Of a stretch of 64,000 bases of DNA, positions 20,453 through 61,655 are shown piece after piece. A program made the position numbers and the translations under genes. The notes beneath the pieces are model-generated. The model was given only the letters and a program-made list of their open reading frames with translations. It did not search any database and had not been told where the DNA came from. How positions within the stretch are numbered: the stretch's first letter is position 1; each line of letters starts with the position of its first letter. Origin of the DNA: Takakia lepidozioides (Eukaryota > Plantae > Bryophyta); contig CM060731.1 in assembly GCA_030704615.1 (NCBI GenBank), positions 12,400,001 through 12,464,000 of the forward strand, read 5' to 3'.

Positions 20453-23087
20453 TCACAATGTTTTCGAGACTTGTGATCCAAAGAACTTGGACTTTACTCC
20501 TTGAACTTCATGAATCTCTTGTGGATTACGGTTTTGGATTTTCATGGACTCCAAAAGTCTAGGCCCACCCAGCTCATGCTTCATATACGAGGCCACATAA
20601 TCCCTGAACTTGTATTCCTGGTAACGAGGAGAATCGGCCTTCTTTACCAGCTGCGGCAATGGCGAGACAATGGAGTCTAAAAGTGGACTGCAGAAAGTGG
20701 CAATTGATACCCTTTCCTGACCCCGGTTGGCAATCACTCGATGCTCTACACTTTTGTATCGTCCGTTCGTAAGCACCTGCATGTGTAATACATGTGAATC
20801 TCTCTGAACGCACTGACTAGATTCCGAATCATATGATATTCATAAACCGTGTGATTTATACGATTTATAAAAGAATTTCTCAATCTGGCCATCTTATCAG
20901 TCTACTAAATTTAACCATATCTAGAGAGCTAGAATCTGAGTCCTCATGCATCACGGGGAGTTGTCGAAATGACGTTGAACTTAGATTTCCAAGTTTCAGC
21001 TTTGCAGTAACAAATACAAATTTCTGTTAATTCTAGATCTTAGATTCAAATGCTGAAGTATATCCAAGTTGAAATTATGCAAGTTCTAGGAATACTCTAA
21101 AATGTTAAGAGTATTTAAACCAGATTTGTACCTGCATTTGATCGCCCAAATTGATAATCAAAGCGCCGGGCAGAGGATGAACGGGCACCCATCGCCCATC
21201 CTTAGAAACTTGGAGACCGCCCACCTGCGTGGCTTGTAGTAGCACTGTCAGAGCGCCTGGATCTGAATGACTGCTCAAGCCAAGAACAAGGTCTGGCTGC
21301 GGACAGGGAGGATAGTAATTCAGTCGGACGACTTGGCTTATCGTTCCAAGCGCTTCCTCCAAGAAAGTAGCGGGGAGACCCAGGTTCTCGGACAATATAG
21401 CGAATAGTTTTTGCGCCAGGATCCGAGCCTCCTTAGAATATTCCTCCATCGCTGGCCTGCAATCATCCATCGTCAGTAAGAATGCTGTGCACAGTGATCA
21501 TCATGTGGATCACGTCCATTTACCATACTCAACACTTTGACATCCTACGAAATCCGCAAATGAAAGTTCACTTTGGCTACAAGAACATCCGAGGAACACC
21601 TTCACCAACAACTGAAACTCCGGACATCCAATATACGGCACAAAAATCTGACCGATTCATATATAATGAATCTCTGTGTAGCCACCTGAGCGATCATCGG
21701 TGACTGTCTCTCACCAATCCAAGTAGGACGACATGACTGTCTCTCACCAAGTAGAACAACACCATGTATGGTAGTGCAAACTTTCTAATAGCAGATCTAG
21801 TATATGTGCACATGAGATTTATAGGAAATATCGACGTAATCTATGAATAGAGGACCTCATATTATGAGATCGTTGTCTACACCACTTCAACCTCGTGACA
21901 GTAACATATGTGGAGAAGATTGAAGAATAGACACGGAAGATTTCTGCGGCGCAGCTTCTTATCTGGTTTCCTAGAAACTGAATGTCTCCATAATGAAGGA
22001 ATTGCTCCTCTGCCGTCATTTCTTCTGTTTTCAGTATCGCAGTCCTCAGAAGTTGAATTTAGCATATCGTGATTGGCACAAAATAAATCACGAAAAGATC
22101 TGTAATATCTGTTTCATCAAGGATTTTATGTATCTGCATTAAACTTCAGTACCCCGAGCTAATTTGATAGATGATCGTATAGTAGAGATTCACGTATCAG
22201 ATGTATAACTTTGTATATAGACCGTGTTAAACTTGTATTTCTATAGTATCATGGAAGCTTACCTATATGAAGAAGGTTTTGGAGGCCACGCTGCCAAATC
22301 TGTGTCGGAGAGCGGCGTGGGTCCGACCCGGTGGTTGAGTACATCCACCCAGTCCCAAAGTGCAGTTTCTGAGACTTTGAACACCCGTCCATAGCCTTCC
22401 ATTCGCTTTCCATTTGCACACAGTTGCTTATCTTCAAGAGGCGAGTTGAAAAAATCCATGGCCGCTTTCTGAACACTGTGAAGCACTGCTTCTGGAATGC
22501 CATGGTTCACCACCTAGCATCCATGCAACAAACGAACACACTTTAGACACTTTGTTCTCTGGTTAGAATCCTCTGAGAAAAAATCGTTGGGCAGGCTACA
22601 GCTCTTGAGAGAAGTAGGAGTCCAGGTCCTGCAACTGGTGAAGAAGCAGGAGGGGTGAAGATCGTTCTCCAGAAGCGATGAACTAACTAGAGCAAAGACA
22701 GAACGACAGAACCTAGGAACTTGTAGAGTTTAGTTGTTAATTGGTATAAGTAATTTGACCAGAACCAAGGGGACTGCTCGGGGACTGTCGTAATTATAAA
22801 ACAAGCTGCAAACTTGGTACCAGCGGGCGTCGTGACGTGTGTCTGAATACCTGGAAGAATCCCCAATCCTCGCATGCAGCGACCATTTCAGCCACAGTTC
22901 GTTGTCTTTGAGAGCCTTGCAGATTTCGCATGTCGATGACAGGGATGCTTTCGGCATATTTAGTGCATACAGCACCTGGTCTCTGATGAAGTGGCCTTAG
23001 AAATCGTCTCGGCACTTTCGTCACACCTCTCTCTACCAAAGGTTGCAGAAGTTCGCCAGTTTCCACCATCTCATTCATACTGTCCAT
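20453..23087 (-). CDS. 2-oxoglutarate/Fe(II)-dependent dioxygenase (DOXC class), 4 exons: 23087-22851, 22513-22263, 21456-21132, 20776-20453
   Basis: Motifs IPVIDM...ACEDWGFFQVVNHGIP, RLNYYPPCPQPDLVLGLSSHSDPGALT (HxD), INLGDQMQVLTNGRYKSVEHRV (distal H) and RVS (RxS). All introns are GT-AG and in phase. Confidence 0.95.
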
Positions 23088-24764
23088 GGCTCGGTGCAAA
23101 TGTGTTGCGGTGAGCTTGCCAGCACTGCGCAGACAGCCGAACCTGTACACTATATGTGCGACCAGCCGAGAGAGTGAATTAGAAAACCATCCGGCAAGAA
23201 GTGTGGAGTCAAAGATAGCGATAGACACCGACCATGCAAGGTTTTCGTCGCTACTGGTATTCTTGCGATCCCGCAACCAGCAGCAAATCGAATCTAAATA
23301 TCCAGAGGAAGACAAAAACTACAGCCCAAACAAGGTCTGAGGCAAAGGGTCAGTTCCACCCAATCAGACGAGAAAGGAAGATCTCGATCTAAAGATAATC
23401 CCAGCTTATTAGCTCCCAACTTGAACAACTTGGAGAGATAAGGAAAACCGGATTCGAAGATCAGCAGAAGCTCTAGCTAGGATGCGAGAGGCCCTCCAGT
23501 GCCTGACAGGAGGAGGATTGCAGTGAACCTGACCAACAAGCTGTGCTAAAACTGCTAAAACAACAATTTCACCACGTGTACCTCTCTATTTTGCACGTGC
23601 CCTATTATCATTCCCAAACGTCACCATGCACTAGGTTCATTCCATATTCAATTGTATCTATCCTATCCCTGCTGGCCTCTGGACTTCCCGCCCGGCGAGT
23701 CCCTTCCTTCTTCCTTTCTTGCCTGAATTAGCGATCCAGATTAGGTCCTCTTCCACTCAGTGCGTGCCCGTGGCTCACTGCATGACACGTCCTGGGTACC
23801 CAAAGATGCCCTGATGCCTGCCCGCCTCGCATCACTCACAAACCTCCACACCCTTAAGTTTTCTGTTTCTAATTACATACGCTGGTCTGTTTTGGAGTTG
23901 GGCTGTTGCTGACAGCCATGTCAGTGAACATGATTGAGCAGTGCACGATGAAGATGATAGGTCCGAGGTCCCTCTCCTTCCTCTCTCCTTGCTTGCTGAT
24001 CTAGTGGATCCTTAAGCCGATTTTTGTCCAACATGCGGACCCACAAATCTAGCACCCACGTGTAGATTATCATGATGGTAGCTGGTGCCAAGGAGTCCAT
24101 GATTGTGGTCCTTTGTATTCTTGCCTATTCTTGTCTAAACTGTAATTCTATATATGTATATATCGACCGGTGGAGCACCTCACTGAGCTGCCTCCATGGA
24201 ATATTATGGCAATATCGAGGAGAATTTCCTGGCAGAATTTTTATCTGCCACTGCTGAATGTGCAGTGGCCGCTAGGGCAGCAGATCAGCTGTTAAACCGC
24301 CAGTAAGGGCTGCGGCTGGTAAGCAAGAGCCAGCAGCTAAGTTCAGCCTCTTTTTTCTAAAGCCCATTTCTACTAAAAGTTGGTATGGCACCTACTTGCA
24401 TAGCTTTCATTTGAGACAACTTGAGGATACGTATTTGAGCTGTAGTGCCGAACAGTGCTTTAACCAATAGGAAGTCAATATTTTGAAATTTTTACATGAA
24501 GAATTGTGTCAATAAAACTTTTCCTTTTTAAACATTTGGGAGCCAATGCCCACAAATTATTAATTATAGTGAGAGGAGAATAACACTTTTTCAAAGTAAC
24601 CTCGCCATGTGGCCTCAAGCACAAGGCTCAAGGGACACAGCCCAGGGGAATGGGGAGAGGATTATACCACACCGACAAGCAAGTTGTAAGTAAGGGGCAC
24701 ATACCACCTTCGGAAGTGGTTGTGGGTTCAATCCACCGATTGGTGTCACAAAGGTATCTACCAG

Positions 24765-35169: not shown

Positions 35170-38100
35170 TCAGTCTATATCCCCAAGGTTCTCTTCACTG
35201 AGATCTTCCTCATTGAGGCCTGCAGTAACCAAGGCTGTGCCATTGGTCGAGTCCCTCTTTGAGCTCAGTTCATCATCAATCCTTACACGCGCAGCCTGTC
35301 AACCACAGCCCTACTTAAGACTTTACTGATTATGAAATGGATAGCTTCGAATTCCAGGCACCAAAAACACACGCAAGCCATTGACATGTTTGTGACGAAG
35401 ATAAGTACTAGTAAGCATCATCATGCAGAACTGTCTTGGTGAGGCCATGGCAAATTTAGGGCCTCAGATTTGCTTAATTCACCTGGAACAGTAATTACTG
35501 AACTCCATATCTACATTCAGTAGTATTAGGGACCCCTCTCATAAGAATCGCCCGAGAGCTGACAAACATTTAAGGTAAGAGGCGTGGCCTGCTGCAATGC
35601 ATGCGCCTTCATTGAGTGTCCCCTTGTGGAGCAATCAACTGTTCCGTACCCACATTGCCATAGAAGAAATGTAAGGGCCAGTTGTCGCTAAATCTTGAAA
35701 GGTGCTGAAAATTCTATCAAACCAGTCAGGATGGCTGCCCCGTGTAGTCAATGTAGACCCAACTAATTTAGTGGCTACGAGACAAACAAATGTTGTAGAA
35801 CACACCTTTTCAATGTCAGCACAGACTGCAGGATTCTCCTGTAAAAACTGCACAGCCTTCTCTCGACCCTGGCCCAATCTGCATTGAAACAATCACGATT
35901 TGTTTTCATCAGGAATTCTGCTGCAGAAATAAAAGCAAATGTTCTGTTTGCTTACCACATTCAACATATATCAAAGTGGACCATATGTAAGTGCCAAGTA
36001 GCTCTGGCTGCTAGCATTGCCTAGACTCAGATAACTAACAAAGAGTCATTATGACTATTTGTTCCAAAAAGTACAATTCCGACTAACAGTAACTGGCTGT
36101 AGCTGCTAGTATAGTGATTTTTACTTCAAAAACCCCATGGGCATCTAGCTTAGACCCACTTACCAATTAACACCCCACTCTAACCATGCAATCCAAACAA
36201 TTACCTTGTGTCTCCATAGCTGTACCAGGCACCTTTTCTCACAACTGCACCAACCGCTTCAGAACAATCCAAAATGCAGCCCTGTATAGACCAACAGTCA
36301 TTGCCTAATCCTGTCATGGCACTACACTGGCAGCACATTTGCTAATCTCTAGTCTTTTCAAACAGATTCCCCACCTCTGCCACATGGGACTTGTAGTAGG
36401 CACACAAAATGCAGCTGGGTGTTCCTGTGAACAAAGCCCTCTTTGCCAGCACAAAATCACCTTTTGCTCAAGATGAAAATTTGGAACGTCTGGTTCTTGT
36501 CTTGGTGAATAAGGGGGTACAGAAGCCCCTACGCTTCATTCATAATTACTCATGTCAAAAAAACCTGCTGAACAAAATGCAGACTGGGTGTTCCTGTGCA
36601 CAATGCCCTCTTTGCAAGCAATGCCAACCTGAGAGCTATCACCAAACTTCAGAACGGCCTGAAAAGCCACCACCCACACACTAAGGCAGACATGCAGGCA
36701 CATACAACAAATCCACCAATAATGGATAGAAAAGTGTATACGATTCAACTTACCAGTTTGCAAATCCCTTGTCCAAAGATTATGTCAAACTCCGCGACCT
36801 TGTATGGCCTCGATACCTGCCCTTGCCATCACATGAGAAATTCATGGTATGAATATGGTTACATACTACCTCCTTAAATCTTTCACACAAGTAGAATGTA
36901 CACTATAAAACTAATCAGAGAAGCACTTCAGTTCATATGACAAGGAAGATCCAAGCACTAGCAACCTCCCACAATCCATTGAACAGTAATAGTTTATTAA
37001 TTAGGAGTCTCACTTCCTAATTTATGTGATAGTGAAGCAGGCGACTACCTTGCTCTTCTGCACTCGCACCCTGGCTCGAATGCCAATATCCTCCTCACCC
37101 CTTGGCTGCGTAGACAACTGGCCATCTCAGTCTCCCTCATCAGGCAGAATATGACAACATTGCAGGATTGAAGCTGATTGATTGAGAAATATAACAGCAC
37201 CCACCGACTTAATCTTTCCAGCATTCCGAATGTCGAGTCGGAGAGAGGCAAAGAACTTTAGAGCTAAACCCCCGCTGGTAACTTCTGGGTTCCCAAACAT
37301 TACAGCAATCTGTATAGCATGCACCAAGCAGTTTGTAAGAAAGGGCATCTCCATAATCACAGACATCAAAATGATGCGATAAACTGCAAAATAGCATTCT
37401 GGATTGAAAACCCATTTAGTGTCACAACAATGTAAACCAGTGAAGCCCAGTACCAGATACTTCAAGTTTGTTGGCTTAGCACTCCATAGACTCATAAGCT
37501 CCACACTACTTGAATACTGTGAGATCACTATCATGTAGTTTTAACCTTCTGCATTACAGCCACATGGCTACAATTCCTAGAGAAGACAAATGTCGACGGG
37601 TTGTGCTTAACAGAAGTTATTGACCCTTATGAGTTGACAATGAATAGCCTGCTACTGGCAGCAAAAGCTATTTGATAGCCAATTGACAGAGCTCTGTTTT
37701 GCCAGTGTGGATTTCCACCAAGCAGTCAACCAATGAATGATTCAGCACAACTGACCTTGTGCCGGATTTGATTTATGAAAATAAGAGTGCAACCAGCACG
37801 TGAGGCATTGGCAGACATCTTACGTAGCGCTTGGCTCATGAGGCGTGCTTGTAGCCCCATCTGCTGCATTCCTATCTCCCCCTGCCATCCAAGATGACAC
37901 ATGTCAGTAAGTTTTTGCAAGGTGCTCCCACACCAGACCAACTCACAACTGCATGTTTGTTGCTTCCAAGTCATTTAAGACCTCAAGATGTAATCACAAA
38001 TGTAGATATAACACATTGGTACCTCAATCTCAGCACGTGGTGTGAGTGCGGACACAGAGTCGATGCAAATGATGTCCACTGCCCCAGATCTGCACATCCG

Positions 38101-40496
38101 GTCGGCGGCTGAGAGAGACACAGCAATATTAGTGAGATTCCTTGATAAACTTGTGCAGCTCATCGCCCTCCCAAATCAGTTATCTTTGAATCGCACATGT
38201 GATTTTGGATAAGAAAAAGGATGCCTGAGCAGCCTGGATCTCTGTCTTTAACCTTAATAAGTCCCAGCACTCATATCAACCCTGGTCAGTTGCTTGAACA
38301 TCACTACAGTAAAGCATGAGTATAATTTAGGGAGCAGAATCAGGGCAGAGCATACTCTCAAGGGCCATTTCTCCATTGTCAGGTTGGCAGACAATCAAAT
38401 TCTCCACATCAACACCCAATGCCTTCGAGTAATACGGATCAAAGCAGTGCTCCGCATCGACTAGCATTGCATTTCCCCCCCGTTTCTGCTTTCCATCCCA
38501 GCCAAGATGCCCACAATGTGACGGCCACTTTGTCAAACTGTCAATGTGTTCTCTTGAACCTATATCCAGAATGACAAAGATTTTTAAGAAGTTGCAACAC
38601 TCATACACTTTATTGTACTCCAACCTTACACCCCAGACAAAACTACTGGCAAGAAGGTGATACATCTACACTGCTCTGCATTTTCTAAGCTCCTATCACT
38701 TCGAACAGGTTGAAGCCAATGGCAGGGTAGTGGAGACCCGGTAGAGGATGAGGTTATACGAACAGTAGGAATGGCATTATGGGTAGTCATTCTCAGTAGT
38801 TTGCAGTGACGGGAAGAGAATATTTATACTTTCTGTGGACAGAGCGTAGGATCAGATTTATCATAGAGAACCAGACTCAAGCACAAGGGTACCATCAGGA
38901 TTTGTGGATTGGTAAGTGCAAGAAACTGCATCAACACATGGACTGGTAAAGGAAACAGACCTGGATTTCTGCAATGGCATGAAGGGCCAGTGTTGTCTTG
39001 CCGCTACTCTCAGGACCAAAGATCTGTCAAGAAAAAGATGCAAATCAGAGAAAACACAGGTTTCCCAAACTAGGCCACCCATAGCAACGCAAGATGTGCT
39101 TTGACAACCAAATAACCAACTCAGAACACAAAAATTGAGAAGTGTTAATCTTCATTGCAAAATTTAACATACTTTGACAGTCTTCACACAAGCTACAATC
39201 CAGTGTAATGGCTCCATTCTAGTCACAACAAGAAGTCAAGAACTGCAGCTTTTCAGCTGTATCTCTCTGAAAACCACCTACTGAAATGTACACTACGAGT
39301 AATAATCTCCATGACCTTACCACCAAGAGCACAAATTTGAGAACATAAATCTGAAATTTTATGTCCTTGCTGTTTAGATGGATTGACAACCTTCAAGTAC
39401 AGGGTAATGATGTTAGTTTCATGACTCAATAGGCCAAAATAGAAATTCCAGGCTTGCTGACAGAGGCAAGTCAGAGATTTAGAACACACACCTCCACAAT
39501 GCGACCTTTAGGTAGGCCCCCACCTAGCGCATAGTCTAACGTAAGGCATCCACTTGGGAATGTCTCCCTGCACCAGTCACCATCTACGTCGTAAGTTTCA
39601 TTGCGGTACCGTGGTCAACTCTCACTTCCATGGAAAACTGACTAAGGCTCTCAAAGCAACACCGCTAAACACTCTTTACCATACAATCCTTCATTCAACG
39701 GAGGATAGAGTTGAACCCAATCCCTTTTCTTGAAGTTGGCTGATCTTGTTATCCAGTCAAAATCAATATGAGCTAGAGTGTGCTCCACCTTCTGCTTTTT
39801 CCGAAGTCTAAACAAGTGAAAGGATGTGATGCAAAGAAGGGCTGGTAAGAACAGCCTACACAAGGGCTCCGCCAGCACTCCCAAGCCTGGTCACACTTCC
39901 TTTGCCGAAGGAGCCATTAATATCGCTCATTGCTGCTTCCAGTGCTTTTTGCTGCCACCTCACACAAAGTCCCGTCTCAACCAGTCCACATATCCATCCC
40001 CAGGGACAGGAGACAACACAGAATGGAAAGCAAAAGAAAAATCGATGCAAATATTTCCAAACCGTACAAACTCCCCTAGGCTCCTTACTCTGGAACTCAC
40101 ATACGCCGTTTGCCCTCCCTTGCTCTCTCACACAATCTCTTAACTACTGAATTTTCTTCAAATTGGGATCATAACTGCAGTCAAAATTTAGACTCCAAGC
40201 CTGGATCACACAGATCATTTCAAATTAAAATTAAAATTCCACCTGCAGTCTCACATTAGGAAAGTTCTTACTCTTTCAAGTGCGTGATGAAGTTGTTCCC
40301 TCTGAGGATCATCAGGAGCTACATCAGCTGCTGCTCGCCTTGCTTTCACATAGGATGACTCTCGAAGGCCCCGCTGCAGAGTTCCATCGCTCCAACTGCT
40401 CCCGCCGCTACCTAAATTGCAGCCTCCTACGTACGATCCCTTGGCTGGTTTTTGTCTTAGGCCCAGTCGAGGTGAACAAGTTGGACCTGCTAGCAT
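35170..40496 (-). CDS. recA: Plastid-targeted RecA recombinase (multi-exon; similar to Arabidopsis chloroplast RECA1)
   Basis: Exons give [53 protein letters not shown] (Walker A), [61 protein letters not shown], and [13 protein letters not shown]. Transit-peptide-like N-terminus and acidic C-tail ending at TGA 35172-35170. Confidence 0.95.
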
Positions 40497-41100: not shown

Positions 41101-42979
41101 CAGGCCAGTATTATATAAACTATATTGATTATTATTAAATTGTATAAGAGCATGACGAAAGACTTGTCGGGTGAGTCCCGGAATAAAGACCGGGCCACGG
41201 GATCTCAGTTGCCATTGACAGGCCGTCAACAAAACTCCGGATGACCCGGTACTTCATGGGGCCCCCCTGTCCCACCCGGCCAAGGGCCCCGCATCGTCTC
41301 CTCTCCCCACTTCAGCAGCCAAGTGGCTCTCCACAGAAGGCAAGACCCGGAATCGCTGGGCTCGGATAATCTGCACACACATGCTCGCTTCCTTTGATTT
41401 AATCTAAAGCACTTACTTTGAATTGAACAAGGGCCCAGCTTGAGATGGAAGCTTCGAGGTTTCTATGTGAGGGTGCTCTTCACCTATTCCGTTCCAGTTG
41501 ACTGGTCTTTTCAGTCCTATTCCTTGGATTCGAGCTTTCTGTACAAAGTTGTTACAGAGTGAACCGGACTGTTGAATGTTCCGAAGAGCTCAAAATTGTC
41601 TACTTACACTGTCAGCAAGGCCGGCGGATGTGTCGACAGTCATTCATGCGAAAATTCTTGGACGATAGCTTTGGGACAGTATTGAAGGAAGGGGTAATGG
41701 AGAAAAACAACTAGAAGATGTTGCTAGAGTCCGTGTCAGATCATGTTTCAGACGAATCCTTCGCCTTCAATCACAATAGAATCTCAGTGTATGATTATGG
41801 GGGATATGGCAACCGGTCGTTTTCAGTTGGCCGAAAATTGCTAAATTAAACTGTGGGAGCCAGAGAGAACTTTCGCGATAGCGGAGTTAGTCTTGTGTCA
41901 GCCTCTATAGTATGAACCGGAAGGAGAATTTCCCACCTTTGATAAAATCTTGCCGAGCTGTGTGATCATCCTTTTGTCTAGCAGAATTGACTATATGACT
42001 AATTGATAGCTGAATTGCACAGGGAAATGTCGATGCACCGGTTTGACTCCCTGCAGGGTGTCACGAGCAATCGCGTCCTTGGCATCGAAAATGCCGCGTT
42101 GTCAATACCGCAGCTAAGTTCGTTCTTCGTGGCGTTGACGCTTCTGGTCTCCACATCCGGTAAGCGTCTCCTCATTGCTAGCTTCATCAGTTGCTCTCAA
42201 TTCATAGTAGCATCATGGGTAATTGCTATCAAACCGGGAAGCTGTGGCTTCCGATGTTGCTGATCAAAGTCGTAGCAAATAGCTGGTTCTTCAAATAAAC
42301 TGCCATGTACCTGGTAGTACACCAGCGGACGATTCCGTTTCAAATTCAACTCGATGGTTTTCGACCGACTATTGCTGTGATGTCCTGATAGGGTGTGAGG
42401 GTGAAATAGGAAGGGCCGGTCGCGATCTGCAAGAAGATACTATGTGAAATTTATGTTAAGGAATCACTTCTTGTGGAAGGGTGCCCCTCAAGGTCAAGTA
42501 GGGGAGTTCTCAGACGTATTGTCTTCAAATTCGCCGTCTTTATCCCTCCCTCACACACGAGCTGGGATAGATTCAATTGTGATTAGATAGCAAAAACAAG
42601 AATGAATACAGGGGACCTGAAGTTGCCCAGCACCCCTGCGGTACTGGGACAGCCCTCAAACACCATCCAACCCAACGCTACAAAAATATGCCTTTGATGG
42701 AGGGTGTATGAAGCGATTCATGATGAAGAAGAGTCATTGTGCTAGAATGACAACTTCCAGGTAGCTATTTGGTACTGGGTCAAGGGCGCAGGAACTTTTC
42801 CTGTGGATTGTCTGAGAGTGTTCTTTTTTATGTGGTTTGTAAGCCTAGTAGGCCTTCCAGCACACAAATCAGCTGCAACAATCCCTACCATTGACAATGA
42901 ATTGCTGACAAACTAGTATTTGGTTGTAATCATAACAAAATGCAATATAACCTCACAATAAAGGCTCTGTGTCTTGCAG

Positions 42980-44714
42980 ATCAACTGGGAATATCTGCTG
43001 TCTCAGCAGCAACCAAATTCACCTTCATCAATGATTGTAGTTTCAATGTGTGGCCAGGGATAGAACCCAATGCAGGTTCGTCCATCCTGGCTGGTGGGGG
43101 ATTTGCAATGGCCTCAGGGAAAACTTGCGCTGTGAGGGTGCAAAGTGGCTGGACAGGACGATTTTGGGGTCGTAGTGGCTGCTCGTTCAATGGGAATGGG
43201 CATGGAACTTGTGCGACAGGGGACTGTGCAGGATTGTTGGAGTGTGCTGGTGCAGGGGGGACTCCACCTGCTACTTTGGTTGAAATCACCCTAAATGGTG
43301 CAAACGATGATGATTTTTATGACATAAGTTTAGTAGATGGTTACAACTTACCTCTCTCCATTACTGCCAATGGGGGATCTGGCAACTGCGGCAGTGCTGG
43401 ATGCACCAGCGACCTCAATTCCAAGTGTCCACAAGAGTTACAGGTACGTCGCTCCTGTTTTCTAATGAAGGTTTTATCACAGTACCTTGTGATGAGAGGA
43501 CTTCCAAAATGAGAGGACTTTAGACTGGTCTTGTGCTGCAACTCCAAAAATCCTGATCTTGCATGTTCATTTTAGGAGTTCTTAAGGGTAATTCCCTATG
43601 AGGGGTTTCCAAGCAATGCCCAGGATACTTGAGGATCTCCATCCATTCTTGTTCCACTGCTTGAACTTGTTGAGACCTACTGATGAAGCGCCACCATACA
43701 AAAGATCATCCCTACATCAAATGGTTATAACATCATGGGACTAGTATTGTGTGCCTAGTTCCCTCAGTTGTGAATGTGAAGCTTCAGGCACCTGAGGCGG
43801 TAGCCTTCAGGATCGAAGTCTGACTTTTGGTGTTTTTCGGAGGTCCTGGATCAACACATCAAATATCTCTGTCCAATACAACAATCTGCCTCCTTGTTGC
43901 AAATTCTCCTTGTTCAGAGAATTGGGCTGGGTCTGGGATGTGTGGATGGTGACAGACAAATGTGACACCATACAATCATTCGTCAATCTTGACTCAAAAC
44001 TTGATAGAGAATTATATTATGAAGATGCTTCAGCACAAATATGTTTGATCAGACACCTACATCTTGTATGTGCATTTCCTATCAGGTTGTGAGCGGTGGC
44101 CAGGTGGTTGCATGCAAGAGTGCTTGTGATGAATTCCGAACTTCACAATATTGTTGTACCGGCCCGAACAAGACGCCCTCCACCTGTCCCCCAACTAACT
44201 ACTCACGCATATTCAAGGATGCTTGCCCTACAGCTTACAGTTATGCCTATGACGACGGCAGCAGCCAGTTTACCTGCAAGGGAGCCAGCTATACTATCAT
44301 CTTCTGCCCCAATGGTACCTAAGTCAATTTTTGACCATACATAGTGTGTCATGATCAAATAACTCTTTGCCAACTTAGTGTCTCCCACGAGGATTTCTAA
44401 TGTCATTGTGTCGTCCTGTTGCAACCACAGGTTCGTCAAGTGTTGGGCAAGCACAGGCCCCTGGGACAAATCCGGCACCAACAGGTAGCTCAAATCCTGC
44501 ACCTCCAGACAGCACAAGTCCCGCACCAGCAGATGGGGGAGGTGATTCTCCAGGGACCACAGGTACACAGGTAGAGGCACCAGGCTCAACTCATGCTGAA
44601 CCAGCATCGGGGGGTGCTTCTTCACTTCTACCAACCCTGGCTGTCCCCTTTCTTGTCAGCTTGTTCGCCAATGTAGTTGCCAGCCTTGTGATCTGGTATA
44701 AGAGAGTGCAATGA
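42980..44714 (+). CDS. Thaumatin-like (PR-5) protein with Pro/Ser/Thr-rich linker and hydrophobic C-terminus; exons 42980-43443, 44086-44314, 44431-44714 (first exon not resolved)
   Basis: FTFINDCSFNVWPG, WTGRFWGRSGC, CATGDC, PPATLVE, DFYDISLVDGYNLP, CKSAC, YCC, YSRIFKDACPTAYSYAYDD. GT-AG introns in phase. Confidence 0.92.
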
Positions 44715-46924: not shown

Positions 46925-49900
46925 TTAATCAGATTGTTGTCTTGCTACCCATACAAGATCGTTGTTAACTTGCCAATGACAAATGTCACCATCCCCGGGC
47001 TTGATCTTCAAGTAAGCAAAAACGGGATGTTTTGGATTGAATTCAGTTGTGTCCAAATGACAAACTGCTGCAAGTCGAACCATAGTTCCATCATTGGCCA
47101 ATAGGGTAACATCAAAAGATTTGGTGTTTTCCAGGTTGTGACAATAATACACCATATAAGGATAGAATGTGTTGTGGCATATTACAGACTTAGCCTTTGG
47201 GTTTGTTTGCTTAGGGGAGATATTGGCAATTCTGGCAGGCTTAAAGGCAAGGTCAGTAGGTGCCCAAGAGGTAATAACCTGCACGTTACCAATCCTCAAA
47301 AAATGTCAGACAAGTAGACTAAAGTAAGTGGCTAGCACACCGCTTGAATTCATTGCATTTTGACCTTGTCCGGTATCCCTTAAAAACCTCTCCAAGTGCT
47401 TTAAAAAAATATACCTAATGACAATCAGATCCCTTACAATCATCATTACCAACAAACACAAACTCAAAATAACCAACCCATTGAACATGTCATGTCATCT
47501 ACTCCACCCCTGACCGGGGCGATAGTCGCAAGGTGAAATGGCCCTTAGTTATGCCGGTTTTGGACGTCCGGATTATTTTTAATTATTTCTCTCTCTTTCT
47601 CTTTCTTTCTCTCTAAGTGGCTAGAGAAATGTATTAATTCTGAATTAAAATCTTAAACAGTATGCCTTATAATAGTATCAATGTAGTGTAGTATCAAACA
47701 CCCATAAACAGAAATCTTACCTCAAGATCCGAAGTCCCAATAAGTGATATTACAAAATAAACCAAGTCTTTCAAAGAAGTGGCGCACAACTTCGTTTCAC
47801 CCTTTGTAGGTGGAGCTTCACAGTCTGATATTGTCTTTTTCATCTGGTTTCTCATTTTCGAGTGGACTGGAATTTTGAATGTTTGTAGTACCTTCAGTGC
47901 CAACCAATTTTTATGAACTTCCATGATTATATAGGTATGAGGTATCAAGTCTCATGTTATATTGATAAAATTGGGAGACTGATATAACTATTTTCACAAA
48001 ATTGATGCATCATTTAAACATATAATATAAATCTAATATAAAAACACTCACTTGTAAATGTGTGATGAGACAAATAAAATGTATCTATGTATATGAGAGA
48101 AAAATAGATACTTCGATTCATTTCCATCCCTATTACCTGTGACAAATCTTTGGTAGAAAATGGAAGAGCATTGGCTACTGCATGAGGTAAGAATCGATGA
48201 TAGGGGATATGATCATGCATATCAGGCGTCCCCATGTAGGCACCTTCCACTAGGTCCTTCACTTGGAAGTATTTGGTGGGCTCCACCGTGTTAGATATTA
48301 TGAGGTTTTTCTCGATATTCATCTTCGATTTCTGATCAGCTGGTTATAAAACAACAAATCACCAATTTCCAATTAATTCACAAGACAAAGATGAAAACTG
48401 TATTAGGTAGACTACTTTTTATCATGCATCTAATTTTGATGCATTTTTCTACGAATAGGACACTTTGTACATAAATTTGACAACATGACTATGTACAACA
48501 ATACCAAATCCATGGAAATTACCCAAATATTGTACCATGTAAAGTCTCTTTACGTAACTTTTGTGATTCAGCATCCGTCATTGGAACATTGACCTGATTA
48601 CATCCAATGAGAGCAAGAATATTCATGAGCATATTACTTCACATATGCTTGATATTTTGCATTATATCTTAATTTTTGTTCAATAAAGTTACACTATGTA
48701 CTATGTATATTTTTTTGTTTCTTATTTATAACAATGCTTTGAACTAAGATGCTCACATGGATCTCATCAATCTGTTCAGTCATCTTCATTTATGTTAAAT
48801 TTACAATAGTATTTAGATTTATATTTCATTCATTTCCTAATTTAACCTCTTGGGAACATTATCAAATTGATCTCATCTCAAATCATAAATGTCATCAATA
48901 ATGAGTGTTGGACTGCAGCTTACCTTTACCGTGGCAGTCACATTTATATTCTCTTTTCTATAGTAGCCCTCGTAATCCCCTGCTAGGGTAACATTTGTGT
49001 TCCTTTTCCTGTAGTAGCCTTCATAATCCCCCTCCAGGGTCACATTTGTCTGGTCTGTCTCGTAGTAGCCCCCATAATCCTCTTCTTGGGTCACATTTGT
49101 GTTCCCTTTCCTGTAGTAGCCCTCATAATCCCCTTCCAAGGTCACATTTGTCTTGTCTTTCTTGTAATAGCCCTCATATTCCCCTTCTAGACTCACATTT
49201 GTGTTCTCTTTCCTATAGTAGCCCTCGTAATCCCCTGCGAGGGTAACATTTGTGTTCCCTTTCCTGTAATAGCCTTCGTAATCCCCTTCTAGAGTCACAT
49301 TTGTCATGTCTTTCCTATAGTAGCCCTCATAGTCCTCTTCCAAGGTCATATTTGTCTTGTCTTTCCTATAATAGCCCTCATAATCCCCTTCCAAGCTGCC
49401 ATTTGTGTTCCCTTGCCTGTAATAGCCCTCGTAATCCCCTTCCAAAGTCACACTTGTCTTATTTTTCCTATAATAGCCTTCATAATCCCCTTCCAAAGTT
49501 ACATTTGTCTTGTCTTTCCTATAGTAGCCCTCATAATCCTCTGCCAGAGTCTCATTTGTATTCGTATTCATACGATCGTGAAGACCCTGCTTGTCGAGAC
49601 TTGAATGAATCTCTTCACCATTTTTTTTTTTCCCCCCAACTGTCATATCAGATGTTTTCTTGAAGCTGTTGCATTCAACCAAAAAAAACTTGGGTCACAT
49701 CAAACTCAATGGTTGAAAAAATCTAAGTTGAAGGTTTTTTCTGAGATAATAAAGATTAGTTGAATTCTAAAGAACAGGTCAAATGATTTGAAATACAGAT
49801 GTCATAACATTATTTTTTTTAAATCTACAATTTTAATCTTTCACAAATCTTATAATAATACCTTTGAGTTGTTGATAGTTGTTGTGTCATAAGTAAGCTT

Positions 49901-50315
49901 GGATTGCACCACAAATTTGCAGCTTTGCAAAACTCAAAGCTTTTGAAAGAACCACTTTTGATGCTCTCAATGAAATGTAATGCTTTTGATGAGTTCAAAA
50001 TAGACAAACGGTCCAACAAAATAGACGGCATGGTGACATTTGGAAGCTGTTGCTCCCAAAAACTCTTATCGGACTCTTGTGATTGAGCATTTGCATCCAC
50101 CACCTGTCCCATGGCCAATACATCATTGAAGAATATTTTTCAACAACATTTAACTAAACGATTCACAAATTGATGAAAAACAATTTGATTTTAAATATTC
50201 AAATTGTGAGTTATTACTGCAATAATAACAAACAGACATAAATACATACTAGGAACATAATCATGAACATGGGCAGCCTAGTAGCCAGCTGATATCTTTG
50301 AATCATGGTTGTCAT
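46925..50315 (-). CDS. BURP-domain protein with 12 tandem Tyr-rich core-peptide repeats (~611 aa); exons 50315-50250, 50103-49862, 49665-48924, 48593-48536, 48339-48137, 47891-47721, 47278-46925
   Basis: Signal-peptide-like N-terminus, then a PG1beta-like segment (FWEQQLP...FCKAANLWC) and the repeat exon. BURP domain KYFQVKDL...FLP...LPFS...CEAPPTKGETKLCATSL...CH-x10-CH-x25-CH-x25-CH-x8-W. All splice sites GT-AG and phase-consistent, with no stops. Confidence 0.93.
47336..47613 (+). mobile_element. 5'-truncated non-LTR retroelement in BURP intron 6
   Basis: 11-bp TSD TAAGTGGCTAG (47325-47335, 47614-47624) and a CT-rich tail. 3' region homologous to 20172-20264. Confidence 0.65.
48945..49560 (-). 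repeat. Coding tandem repeat, 12 x 51 bp (17 aa, xxTNVTLEGDYEGYYRK)
   Basis: Read directly in ORF 48873-49682. The core is DYEGYY in 10 units, EYEGYY in 1 and DYGGYY in 1. Confidence 0.97.
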
Positions 50316-58338: not shown

Positions 58339-58692
58339 TTATAGGTTATGAATGAGGATGTGTATAAATTGGAGCTGTCGGCAAATAGCAAGGTGCATCC
58401 GGTATTCTACGTCTCCCTTTTGAAGCCTTACTTCAAAGATGAAGCGCGTCCGAATCGGCATCAAGTGTTGCGTCCGCCACCTGTGCTGTTGGATCATGAA
58501 AATGAACATGAGTACGAGGTGGAGGCAGTGCTTAAGTCGAGGAGGTTCAAGAATCGAGAAACGGGGTATCTCGTGAAATGGAAGGGCTATCATCAAGTGG
58601 AGGTAACTTGGGTGCGTGCCTCAGAAATGGGAAACGCATCCGAGGCGGTTGCAGCTTTCGAAGGGCGACTTCAAAAGCGGAAGAAGCGTTGA
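58339..58692 (+). mobile_element. Ty3/gypsy chromovirus integrase C-terminus with chromodomain, followed by a PPT and probable 3' LTR start (~58727)
   Basis: YKLEL...VHPVFYVSLLKPY (GPY/F-region) and YEVEAVLKSR...YLVKWKGY...TW (chromodomain). Followed by the purine tract GGGGGAGGAAA then TG. Confidence 0.85.
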
Positions 58693-60209
58693 TGGGGACA
58701 TCAACCTTAGATCGTGGGGGAGGAAATGCATGCTTAGCCTGGCTTGGCTAGCTCAGGAATCCGATTGCAAAAACTTGTATTATACAAATTTTGTTATAAA
58801 TGAAATGGTTTCCAAATGTTGTGCTTCCTATTTTGTTTGGAAGGATGATGCATGGTATGGGTGGCTAGTGTGTAGAATGCATGCTAGCTTACAAAAGTGG
58901 GAGAGATAAATTGGATTAATCGTGTGTTTGCGCAGTGCCAAAATCGGGTGACTCCCATCCAAGGGGCAAGGAAACTTACGCCTTCTCTGGGAGTTCACGT
59001 GCTAGTGCGCACCTGGCGCGTGCACGTACTATAACTGCGCTACCGAGGGGGTTGTCTTGTAGTGTGGACTAACGTGGAAACTACGTGCCTTCGTTCACGT
59101 ACTATAATCGTGTAACCTCGAGACGAAGTCGTAGTGTGGCTTTGGCATGTTCCTGTACCTCAGGCCAGCATTCCAAGGCGGACCCAATTGTAATGATTGG
59201 GGCACGCGGTTGGTTCAAGGTTATCTTCCTAGTCAAAAAGGGTTCAAGGTGAACCCTTGCTCAAGATGATGCCCAAAAACGGCATCACGAGCGATCGCAA
59301 GCAATGTTGTTGCAGTAAGGCGATTCGATCCTCGAGGAGGATCGTTCTTTGGCCTTGAAGTGGGCAAAGAAGAATGCACTGGGTGGAGCTTGAGAGGTTC
59401 CACCCTTGGCCGGGACTTGGAGGAAATCGACCAAACTAGCTAGTGGGGAGTAGAGTCAAGTGAGGGTTTGGTTCTTTGTCATGGGACGCCATGGTACGGA
59501 AACAAACGCCTTTATGTGGGATGCCACAACTTGGATGTTTGTTTCTACAAAATGGACAAGTCGATGATGACATCGACTCCCTGTTGATGGGGGTGTGTGT
59601 CGCGGCCCTTTGCCTTGAGGACTGGGGGTCGGGACACGAGAGGGGCTGCCCCTGTGGTGGGGGCAGTGGCAACAATAGGTACGGGGGCTGAAGCACCCTT
59701 GAGTGCCCAAGGCACTCAAGGAGGCAGAGACGCTCACTAGGTGGAGCCCCGCACACCGGGTTGCGGTGGGGGTGGTTCCACGAGGGGTGGTGGTAGCTTA
59801 GTGGGTCTTAGTGGGGGTGGCATAGGACTCACCATGGGGCGGAGACCTTGTGGTGGGAGTCGTGGGGAGTCTTGGGACTCATCACGGTCCAATGGGGCCG
59901 TGGTGGGTGGGCCAAGACTCACCGCGACTCATCACCGGGAATGGAGGGTCTTCGTGGTGGTTCGCCATAAAATGACTGGGTTGTTTGTGAAACCGCCGCG
60001 GTCGGTCACAGAAGTATATATAGGGAGTAGTAACCCCGAGAACGGTACAAGCCCGTTGGTGACCAAAAACTAGTGAGTAAGCGTGCGAGCCGGAAAGCGA
60101 CCAAGGTGTGAGAAGCTGTTCCGGACTGCCAACGACCAAAGGGAATTTCCATTAGGCCCAAATTGAACGAGGGTCTGGTGGAGGAGTAAAGGGGGACCGG
60201 TATGTCCCG

Positions 60210-61655
60210 GTGAAACACCCTTTTGAGGTGCTCCAGGTGCTCTTCCTTTGTTTTCGAGTACACCAAGATGTCATCAATGTACACGATCACAAAGTCATCC
60301 AACCACTCTTGGAAAAGGTTGTTCACTAGCGTGCTAAAGATCGCGGGTGCATTGGTGAGCCCAAAAGGCATCACCAAGAACTCATATGAACCATATCTTG
60401 TCCTGCACGCGGTCTTCTCCTTATCTCCTTCCGCCACTCGGATTTGATGGTAGTCGGAGCGCAAATCGATCCGGCTGAAATACTTCGCTCCTGCCAACCG
60501 ATCGAAAAGGTCGTTGATCCTTGGCAAAGGGTACCGGTTTTTTATAGTCACCTTATTCAGAGCCCTGTAATCGACACACATCCGCAACGTCCCATCCTTC
60601 TTGTCTGCGAATAGCACCGGGGCTCCGTAAGGTGACTTACTCTGCCGGATGTACCCCTTTGACATTAGATCCTTGAGCTGGGCCTTCAGCTCGACCAACT
60701 CTTTGTGGCTCAACCGGTAGGGCGCCTTGGCAAGCGGCTCCAATCCCGGTATCACCTCTATCTTGTGGTCAACTCCTCTCCGCGGTGGCAAGCCGCTTGG
60801 TAAATCCTCCGGCATCACATCCTGGTATTTCTCCAAGATCCCCTTGATCCAATCTGGGCTCGGCTCCCTATCGATTTCTCATTCCACTTGTCTTACGTAA
60901 AGCAAAAATTGGGGCTCGTGTGGCTCCTCCATGGCCCACTCCTTTGCTAACAATAGGTTTATTCGCCCTCCCACTCGGCTGGGCGTTTCCGATACCCGTA
61001 AAACTTCGCCACCATTCCCACATAGTAGCGTGACTATTATCTTGCGGCCATCTATGACCGCTCCGGATTTGCTCAGAAAGGTCATCCCCAAAATGAGATC
61101 CACTCCATCGATCTTGCAAATGGTGAAGTTCTCACGTCCCTCCCAATTCCCGAGCTGAAGAGGAACTTCGAACGCCAACCTCGTCGCCAATTGTGGTTCT
61201 CCTTTGGCAGAACGTACCTCAATAGAGGCCCCCACATCACTTGTCGGGAGCCCCAGCTTCCGTGCCGTTGTTGGTGTCATGAAGGAGTGTGACGCTCCTG
61301 TGTCCACCAACAACGACACGTTAGTTCCGGAAATTATCCCACTCATGAACATTAACTGACTCCCTTTACGCAAGGTGCCAGTTTCCTGATACAACTTACA
61401 AGAGTAGTTGCCCACCTTGCAGGTCTTGGCGACCACTGCCTCCACCAAGCGACTGATGGAATCTTCGGACAGCTCCGCGGTCACCCGAGTCGTGTTCAAT
61501 TGTCGGGGTTTTGCACACTTCTTAGCTATGTGCCCGGGCTCCCCGCAATTAAAGCACACTCCATCGAAGATCGCCTTTTGTCCGCCATAAGCCGCCGCAC
61601 CTGATTTTCTGTAGTGTGAATGCAGGGGAGTAACAGTGAAATTTTTGTTTGGCAT
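60210..61655 (-). mobile_element. Ty3/gypsy gag zinc knuckle-protease-reverse transcriptase fragment (frameshifted, RT truncated)
   Basis: CFNCGEPGHIAKKC (CCHC), LLVDTGASHSF (aspartic protease), [35 protein letters not shown]. Confidence 0.92.

Follow-up and report, generated by a model that had tools for sequence, protein, structure and literature searches.

A bryophyte-like BURP gene with a 12-unit tyrosine-rich array: a probable PG1beta-side relative that may act on its own repeats

Introduction

BURP domains act as oxidative cyclases with a dicopper centre (bioRxiv 10.64898/2026.01.20.700549; PMC8672867), and what defines burpitides as a class is a macrocycle formed in the core peptide by copper-dependent crosslinking of side chains (PMC11253845). 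In PG1beta, all FxxY Phe residues carry -2 Da, and the responsible enzyme is unknown (PMC5313189). Within the stretch of DNA analysed here (64,000 nucleotides, hereafter the window), one gene joins a BURP domain and 12 tandem Tyr-rich units in a single chain, which raises the question of what becomes of these units. The initial annotation proposed a new RiPP system and named the PG1beta clade as the alternative. In our analysis, the best-supported reading, which we adopt tentatively, is that of a secreted glycoprotein with [Y]xxY motifs that its own BURP domain would oxidise.

Results

Gene model and BURP domain

An intact seven-exon gene had been annotated, and script-checked junctions bore this out on the minus strand at 46925-50315 (Table 1). 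All seven exons are open, the six introns (146-442 nt) are GT...AG in every case with consistent phases (0, 2, 0, 1, 0, 0), and the coding sequence comprises 1830 nt or 609 codons. Exon 3 also contains an alternative in-frame donor at 48924 and a G6A11 homopolymer at 49621-49637. Judged by eye, the N-terminus is signal-like, with a hydrophobic run from exon 1 into exon 2 and A-N-A before Q. With this feature, the gene product matches the modular plan of the BURP family (signal-like peptide, conserved segment, repeat segment, C-terminal BURP domain), and its exons are collinear with full-length relatives in alignment A1.

Table 1. Features of the repeat-bearing BURP gene (positions in the window)
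Feature	Position	Strand	Description
Exon 1	50250-50315	(-)	22 codons, with the start codon and a signal-like peptide; donor GTATGT
Exon 2	49862-50103	(-)	conserved N-terminal module, W..LP..MP ... FCxxAxLxC
Exon 3	48930-49665	(-)	42-aa linker, then repeat array
Repeat array, 12 units of 51 nt / 17 aa	48930-49538	(-)	DYEGYY-RK-xx-TNVTLEG, 204 aa
Exon 4	48536-48593	(-)	19-codon linker; GT-AG, phases fit
Exon 5	48137-48339	(-)	linker and start of BURP domain (YF..DL...FLP)
Exon 6	47721-47891	(-)	middle of BURP domain (C..P..GE.K.C.TS)
Exon 7	46925-47278	(-)	C-terminal half of BURP domain, stop codon included
Four Cys-His motifs	46976-47179	(-)	spacing 10/25/25; last motif is CHW

Sequence searches were run exon by exon. 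Against the Pfam BURP profile (PF03181, cut-off 27 bits), exon 7 scored 118.8 bits over profile positions 103-215 and exon 6 scored 58.7 bits over positions 48-106, while exon 5 (positions 2-50) reached 20.6 bits and by itself lies below the cut-off. Jointly, exons 5-7 span profile positions 2-215 in order. The four CH motifs claimed in the annotation are present, all within exon 7; their arrangement, CH-X10-CH-X25-CH-X25-CH, falls within the BURP family motif CH-X10-CH-X25-27-CH-X25-26-CH. Exon 7 matched the solved cyclase AhyBURP (8sy2) with an E value of 6e-15 over 85 residues, which is an ordinary family-level match.

The repeat array and its selection

Tandem Repeats Finder (period 51, 12.3 copies, 48937-49563) confirmed the 12 in-phase 17-aa units described at the outset. 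A degenerate core pattern gave 12 matches in strict 51-nt phase and none elsewhere in the window, where shuffled sequences expect 0. The DYEGYY core was found to be exact in 10 of the 12 units, the others reading EYEGYY and DYGGYY (one each). The proposed dibasic RK site likewise stood for most of the array: it follows nine of the 12 cores, the remaining three being followed by RQ, KK and ET, so that RK or a similar basic pair occurs after 10/12.

Across units, the core showed a pN/pS of 0.028 with saturated synonymous sites, indicating strong purifying selection, whereas spacer positions 9-10 showed a pN/pS of about 1.1, as in neutral drift. Based on these values, the conserved entity is the motif rather than the DNA repeat. 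The core Gly codon, GGC, is invariant in all 12 units, and Tyr accounts for 17.7% of the residues in the array.

An AF2 model of the array showed a regular beta stack with two strands per unit at low confidence (pLDDT 60.5) and is given little weight here; tandem repeats readily give false solenoids in structure prediction. In a Foldseek search of this model against the PDB, no match was obtained at E <= 0.001, and the weak rows were all beta-helices.

The array is also rich in predicted N-glycosylation sites. A sequon is kept in 12/12 units, giving 13 NxS/T in exon 3 as a whole, and the single unit in which N12 was lost has gained an N-K-T three residues upstream of that position. The sequon density is 5.3 per 100 aa, 30 times the value of 0.17 found in 23 burpitide-like, repeat-bearing BURPs of the RD22/USP side; in PG1beta-like proteins the value is 1.27.

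Such a gene could in principle be a silent or decaying copy, or a mis-joined model, without any product. Two results point in that direction: transcripts of the locus were found in none of the listed sequencing runs, two same-species contig sets giving a single 36-nt hit that fell within a simple repeat in intron 6, and no close homologue was found among 1.8 billion representatives (best match 48%). Against it stand the seven open exons, the six canonical introns with matching phases, the collinearity with full-length relatives and the purifying selection on the core despite saturated synonymous change. We consider this explanation highly improbable; by its sequence features the gene looks expressed and is under selection.

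Searches for homologues and neighbouring genes

No homologue of the repeat exon was found among 8000 scored candidates of 136-432 aa, a length range that excludes full-length kin. JGI metagenome contigs contained no match to exon 7 or to the array, and ESM Atlas look-alikes of the array scored at most 0.80, which is chance level. A profile search with alignment A1 returned only two of the alignment's own members. BURP proteins with repeats are already known; the present array has no homologue in the databases searched.

The neighbours of the gene are a RecA-like gene, a thaumatin-like gene and transposons, with a 2-ODD gene 24 kb off. A biosynthetic cluster was considered and rejected, the neighbourhood being without a protease, a precursor or a second BURP gene.

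Placement on the PG1beta side of the family

The annotation had also noted a resemblance to the PG1beta clade. In BLASTP searches, the N-terminal module matched the PG1beta-like protein P0035 (E 2e-9) and the Ginkgo protein P0005 (E 4e-12). Its FCxxAxLxC motif is, among 150 relatives, confined to the basal/PG1beta side and an adjoining clade of 3 rows. The last CH motif of the gene product is of the CHW type, which occurs in 24 of the 27 proteins on the basal/PG1beta side compared with 1 of the 127 on the RD22/USP side. A BURP phylogeny spanning the basal/PG1beta and RD22/USP sides, built without SkrBURP and other validated cyclases, placed the gene on the basal/PG1beta side of the deepest split (25|45, UFBoot 100 / SH-aLRT 97), although an AU test did not reject a tree that joins it to the RD22/USP side (p 0.30, delta lnL 11.3). 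Every burpitide-like repeat BURP in the set of 150 relatives sits across the tree from the gene.

The gene is not a member of the PG1beta-like clade of 5 rows. Closest to it stands Ginkgo P0005, which, like P0029, the other near relative, has no repeats. The array therefore probably arose independently. In alignments to a profile of the 14-aa PG1beta unit, 11/11 complete units fitted best in a register that places YxxY on FxxY and N-V on N-[VG]; for the consensus unit, the shuffle p was 0.026-0.042. By BLASTP, the similarity between the array and PG1beta repeats was not significant (E 0.77). The array does not consist of 14-aa FxxY repeats: its units are 17 aa long and start with YEGY(Y), and no F..Y occurs in it. 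The relationship to PG1beta suggested earlier finds support in the N-terminal module, CHW, the side of the tree and the YxxY/FxxY register; strict membership does not (YxxYY instead of FxxY, 17 instead of 14 aa). Judged from sequence, we lean towards placing the gene on the basal/PG1beta side of the BURP family as an early PG1beta relative rather than a strict member.

Comparison with PG1beta-like and moss BURP proteins

PG1beta-like systems (tomato PG1beta, AtPGL1-3, OsBURP16) have the same overall plan of signal peptide, N-terminal module, aromatic repeats and BURP domain, and P0035 equals the predicted protein in length (609 aa). Also shared are CHW in the last CH motif, glycosylation sites inside the repeats, and units that start aromatic-x-x-Tyr with N-V about 8 residues on. 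The differences lie in the units, which are 17 rather than 14 aa long, have Tyr in place of the Phe that becomes dehydro-Phe, and add one Tyr plus a basic pair; near-identity extends over the entire unit here, whereas only F, Y and N are conserved in PG1beta. The gene has 7 exons versus 2 in the Arabidopsis AtPGLs (PMC4460304), and its host is bryophyte-like, unlike those of PG1beta-like systems.

The nearest BURP domains, which come with a common N-terminal module, are those of bryophyte/'BURP IV'/subfamily-1 proteins (for example PpBURP2 and Sphagnum CY35_14G014900) and Ginkgo Gb_24176. None of these proteins has a repeat domain, in contrast to the 204-aa array described here. The occurrence of such an array in a bryophyte-like genome also contrasts with the statement that the original (moss) BURP proteins are without a repeat domain (PMC9121072). 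For the seed-free host suggested in the annotation, the support is indirect.

Comparison with fused burpitide cyclases

A live rival, possible but in our judgement doubtful, is that the gene encodes a genuine burpitide precursor of the fused, autocatalytic kind. Its BURP domain would crosslink Tyr5 and/or Tyr6 to an upstream residue of each DYEGYY, and proteases would free 12 small mono- or bicyclic peptides, the glycosylated spacers being discarded. The anatomy agrees with this. Like LbaLycA, SkrBURP, CcaBURP1/2, KjaBURP and AhyBURP, the protein combines a 4xCH BURP domain with many short aromatic-ended cores in one chain; 12 Tyr cores lie upstream of BURP in one reading frame on phase-matched exons. 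These cores are near-identical, end in Tyr-Tyr and are under extreme constraint next to neutral spacer positions, and 10 of them precede RK or a similar basic pair. The CH motif is complete and the domain is kin to the solved AhyBURP. There are also precedents: the copy number equals that of LbaLycA, with its 12 cores, and the double-Tyr core recalls selanine and the lycophyte SkrBURP, which yields a bicyclic double-Tyr product from xLxYxxY (PMC11253845; bioRxiv 10.64898/2026.01.20.700549). Multicore precursors prevail in burpitide pathways (PMC12186524).

The features that discriminate between the two sides of the family argue otherwise. A sequon in each unit sets the array apart from the 23 burpitide-like repeat BURPs, and the N-terminal module, the CHW signature of the fourth CH motif and the tree all indicate the other side of the family, which is without a validated cyclase in the material examined. 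The core is acidic and contains no Leu, Ile, Pro or Gln, whereas known Tyr-ether cores have a hydrophobic Leu/Ile/Pro as acceptor. In the candidate-protein and JGI metagenome searches, no relative was found whose core would show conservation between species. Of the proposed new RiPP system, then, the fused type II anatomy (4xCH BURP, 12 Tyr-ended cores in one chain, selection on the core) is retained; because every computed discriminating feature favours the PG1beta side, the RiPP reading is possible yet not best supported.

Discussion

The reading that we prefer, a secreted glycoprotein modified by its own BURP domain, can be put as a sequence of events. The array would be N-glycosylated in the ER and would then act, within the same molecule, as substrate for the dicopper centre of the BURP domain, which would oxidise each [Y]xxY(Y) with a change of 2 Da per event. 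The outcome may be a dehydro-residue, as reported for every FxxY of PG1beta, or a Tyr-O-C ether crosslink, as in burpitides of the cyclopeptide-alkaloid type. The product would remain in the wall or apoplast as a rigid, glycosylated, Tyr-rich protein, or be cut at RK into 17-aa glycopeptides; a free hexapeptide would not be released.

Counted against this glycoprotein are its near-identical units and dibasic site, which resemble multi-core RiPP or prohormone precursors more than loose FxxY repeats. Also counted against it are the position outside the PG1beta-like subclade, the repeat-free nearest relatives, the E value of 0.77 for the array in BLASTP, a unit-profile p of only about 0.03, the AU p of 0.30, the pLDDT of 60.5 and the lack of significant Foldseek matches.

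The gene probably lies on the family side of PG1beta, for whose FxxY -2 Da modification no enzyme has been assigned (PMC5313189). Since the 12 units are almost identical and each has a basic cleavage site, one tryptic or Lys-C peptide species would report the chemistry. Burpitides have been recorded from vascular plants only (PMC11253845), and the genome here is bryophyte-like. If the BURP domain modifies the units, wall-protein biology would be linked to RiPP biosynthesis and the chemistry pushed back to early land plants. If it does not, the gene encodes simply another lineage-specific BURP repeat protein. That it represents the first repeat-bearing self-modifying BURP of a bryophyte-grade plant, in which a PG1beta-side domain modifies a new acidic triple-Tyr core by installing Tyr-based crosslinks or dehydro-residues, is conceivable but rather unlikely. 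Were it so, PG1beta wall proteins and burpitide RiPPs would be two outcomes of one ancient mechanism, the action of BURP on repeats in its own chain, and the long-sought enzyme behind the -2 Da of PG1beta would be identified.

The array may instead be no BURP substrate at all. It would then be an acidic repeat, rich in Tyr and structural or signalling in function, on which other enzymes act, and BURP would have a different role such as metal binding or targeting. The candidates would be sulfation of Asp-Tyr by TPST or di-tyrosine crosslinking of the peroxidase type within the wall. In 11/12 units, D-Y has acidic neighbours (E at -3 and +1; E-G-D-Y-E), so that the array, in a precursor that is predicted to be secreted, shows by sequence the features of a plant TPST substrate; the minimal plant motif is an Asp-Tyr pair with acidic residues close by, and a moss is among the plants that have TPST (PMC3023852). 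The high Tyr content fits as well, and for most BURP proteins catalytic function has never been demonstrated (PMC11253845). Yet where BURP acts on its own chain, the recurrent setting is a fusion of repeats to the domain, and sulfation alone leaves the invariance of three Tyr and the Gly unexplained. We regard modification by other enzymes alone as improbable. Such modification is nevertheless compatible with the secreted glycoprotein proposed here, and the two are not mutually exclusive.

Structure of the BURP gene

The BURP gene was read from the sequence and then checked by script as seven exons on the minus strand. Its six introns (146-442 nt) are each bounded by GT...AG, the phases (0, 2, 0, 1, 0, 0) are consistent, and the CDS of 1830 nt comprises 609 codons. 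Judged by eye, e1 and the first residues of e2 read like a signal peptide, with basic residues, an 11-residue hydrophobic run and A-N-A before Q. Matches to Pfam BURP (PF03181) lie in collinear order in e5, e6 and e7, and the script placed the whole motif CH-X10-CH-X25-CH-X25-CH in e7. Sequence, script and Pfam together confirmed the initial annotation of a seven-exon gene with a signal-like start, 12 units of 17 aa and a BURP domain with four CH motifs. The G6A11 homopolymer in e3, just upstream of the array, encodes G-G-K-K-K-N and is prone to slippage or assembly error; the frame is unbroken in the present assembly.

Features in the window (e1-e7, exons of the BURP gene)
Feature	Position	Strand	Remarks
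e1	50315-50250	-	sequence read and script
e2	50103-49862	-	sequence read and script
e3	49665-48930	-	second in-frame donor 6 bases further, at 48924
e4	48593-48536	-	sequence read and script
e5	48339-48137	-	sequence read and script; Pfam BURP positions 2-50, 20.6 bits
e6	47891-47721	-	sequence read and script; Pfam BURP positions 48-106, 58.7 bits
e7	47278-46925	-	includes stop; Pfam BURP positions 103-215, 118.8 bits
Repeat array (TRF)	48937-49563		period 51, 12.3 copies
G6A11	49621-49637	-	within e3
CT-rich simple repeat	47576-47618		intron 6
Thaumatin-like (PR-5) ORF	42940-43512	+	190 aa; Pfam Thaumatin E 2e-49, profile positions 1-136 of 209
RecA-matching ORF	37127-37534	-	bacterial-type RecA profile positions 191-231
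RecA-matching ORF	38327-38665	-	bacterial-type RecA profile positions 76-121
2-ODD ORF with DIOX_N (N-terminal domain, 2-oxoglutarate/Fe dioxygenases)	22794-23315	-	24 kb from BURP gene
Ty3/gypsy parts (zinc knuckle, aspartic protease, reverse transcriptase, chromodomain) and hAT transposase dimerisation-domain remnant	58348-61655 and 13459-14028		

Conservation of the repeat units

At the protein level the array consists of 12 units of 17 aa. Twelve DYEGYY copies had been proposed; the 12 units stand, and the exact hexapeptide is present in 10 of them, the other two cores being EYEGYY and DYGGYY. The site after the core, described as mostly dibasic, is indeed RK in 9/12 units (RQ, KK and ET in the others), and the spacer ahead of the first core is degenerate. 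Scanned across the whole 64 kb, a degenerate nucleotide pattern of the core matched 12 times (expected 0), always within the array and strictly in phase.

The units share 63-92% nucleotide identity, and their Tyr, Asp and Glu codons switch freely among synonymous forms; they are old copies without recent homogenisation. pN/pS was 0.028 for the six core codons (pS 0.78, pN 0.022), 0.33 for T-N-V-T, 0.38 for L-E-G and about 1.1 at unit positions 9-10, in samples that are not independent because the units are paralogues inside one gene. Despite this, the contrast between unit columns is clear: selection preserves the hexapeptide, and we consider it highly improbable that the gene is dead.

An NxS/T sequon is kept in 12/12 units; where one unit has lost its customary Asn, a new N-K-T stands 3 residues upstream. 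The array region carries 13 sequons in 245 aa (5.3 per 100), compared with 0.17 per 100 in 23 RD22/USP-side BURP proteins with repeats, counted over their N-terminal parts, and 1.27 per 100 in 3 PG1beta-like proteins. One predicted glycan per unit would fit a persistent glycoprotein and would be foreign to the burpitide-like precursors examined.

Placement in the BURP family

Searches were run exon by exon with single exons as queries, and the tree was built from e7 only. Exhaustive HMMER with e7 against 1.84 billion representatives returned 748 relatives, all at 48% identity or less, the nearest being Ginkgo Gb_24176 (P0005); a Sphagnum protein was present in the cluster of another clade member. 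In a 155-row tree of the e7 region, the gene fell inside a group of 25-28 rows comprising PG1beta-like proteins and short non-repeat proteins with a common FCxxAxLxC N-terminal motif, while a separate 127-row group held every RD22/USP-like protein and every protein with burpitide-like repeated cores. A careful 70-row tree gave a 25|45 split (UFBoot 100, SH-aLRT 97), with the gene adjoining P0005 and P0029, the other nearest relative. With the gene constrained to the RD22/USP side, the tree was not rejected by the AU test (p 0.30, delta lnL 11.3); deep placement on 117 residues is not secure from the tree alone.

Two independent characters support placement on the basal/PG1beta side. The N-terminal modules of the Ginkgo protein (E 4e-12) and of a PG1beta-like protein from taro (E 2e-9) are homologues of exon e2, and the residue following the fourth CH is Trp, as in 24/27 proteins on that side versus 1/127 on the other, where Phe prevails (104/127). 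The proposed PG1beta-like N-terminus and BURP domain were upheld as to e2 homology and, less securely, as to side of the tree, but not as to membership of the PG1beta-like subclade. Since the gene falls outside that subclade and its closest relatives lack repeats, the array was probably acquired independently.

Among the angiosperm RD22-like proteins, P0001, P0002, P0003, P0018 and P0034 each carry two tandem BURP C-terminal halves, either true fusions or merged models of neighbouring paralogues.

Possible modification of the units

A PG1beta unit profile was built from 47 14-aa units with F-x-x-Y. For 11/11 complete window units, which are 17 aa long with Y-x-x-Y, the best alignment set Y-x-x-Y on F-x-x-Y and N-V on N-[VG], with three extra residues inserted. 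The consensus-unit score was attained by 78/3000 full shuffles and by 127/3000 shuffles with YEGY fixed, so that the likeness in register is no more than suggestive; when the array was compared with a PG1beta-like protein by plain BLASTP, no match reached significance. AF2 modelled the array alone as a regular beta stack with two strands per unit at low confidence (pLDDT 60.5, pTM 0.46), and Foldseek on this model returned nothing significant, the weak rows being beta-helices throughout. We give the model little weight because tandem repeats often produce such models.

Our tentative first choice is that the gene encodes a secreted BURP protein from the PG1beta side, with heavy N-glycosylation and with Tyr-rich units that its own BURP domain would oxidise. 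In PG1beta, the Phe of every FxxY carries -2 Da, read as dehydro-Phe, and the responsible enzyme was not identified (PMC5313189). As dicopper enzymes, BURP domains couple a C(sp3) position to Tyr or Trp after abstracting its hydrogen (PMC8672867; bioRxiv 10.64898/2026.01.20.700549). These reports bridge the glycoprotein and RiPP readings, and we infer that the BURP domain itself may make the PG1beta modification. That the repeats stay unmodified, or are modified by enzymes other than BURP, appears improbable.

A true burpitide precursor releasing small peptides is a less probable but substantial alternative. The many identical short cores with aromatic ends, the basic pair after most of them and the copy number of 12, as in the fused cyclase LbaLycA, all speak for it, as does the lycophyte precedent of a double-Tyr bicycle, selanine (xLxYxxY, compared with Y-E-G-Y-Y here), made by SkrBURP (bioRxiv 10.64898/2026.01.20.700549; PMC11253845). 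However, the family placement (tree, e2 module and Trp), the sequon-dense units and, suggestively, the F-x-x-Y-like register argue for the PG1beta-side glycoprotein. A compatible additional modification may be Tyr sulfation: the minimal plant TPST motif is Asp-Tyr with acidic neighbours, a moss has TPST (PMC3023852), and E-G-D-Y-E occurs in 11/12 units. A bench test of the gene is worthwhile, since the chemistry can be read out easily from so regular an array.

Neighbourhood and distribution

No biosynthetic cluster surrounds the BURP gene in the window, its neighbours being RecA-like, thaumatin-like, Ty3/gypsy, a hAT remnant and a distant 2-ODD. For the thaumatin-like ORF the best relatives come from a lycophyte and from the mosses Ceratodon and Physcomitrium, at just 56-62% identity, which makes the suggested seed-free host plausible but short of proof; the gene probably continues in another exon, since the Pfam match ends at position 136 of 209. 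The two RecA-matching ORFs probably represent exons of a RecA gene whose product is targeted to an organelle. In jujube, a 2OG enzyme tailors cyclopeptide alkaloids (bioRxiv 10.64898/2026.01.20.700549); the 2-ODD family is huge, and nothing in the window ties this ORF to the BURP gene. None of the listed sequencing runs contained the locus, and two contig sets from the same species left it uncovered; their sole match, 36 nt, lies in the CT-rich simple repeat of intron 6 and is thus not evidence of transcription.

Searches of proteins of 136-432 aa, JGI metagenome contigs, the Atlas and the 150 best BURP relatives yielded no array homologue. Moss BURP proteins have been described without a repeat domain (PMC9121072), and burpitides as spread over Tracheophyta, with none known from ferns (PMC11253845); a repeat-bearing BURP gene in a bryophyte-like genome extends both statements.
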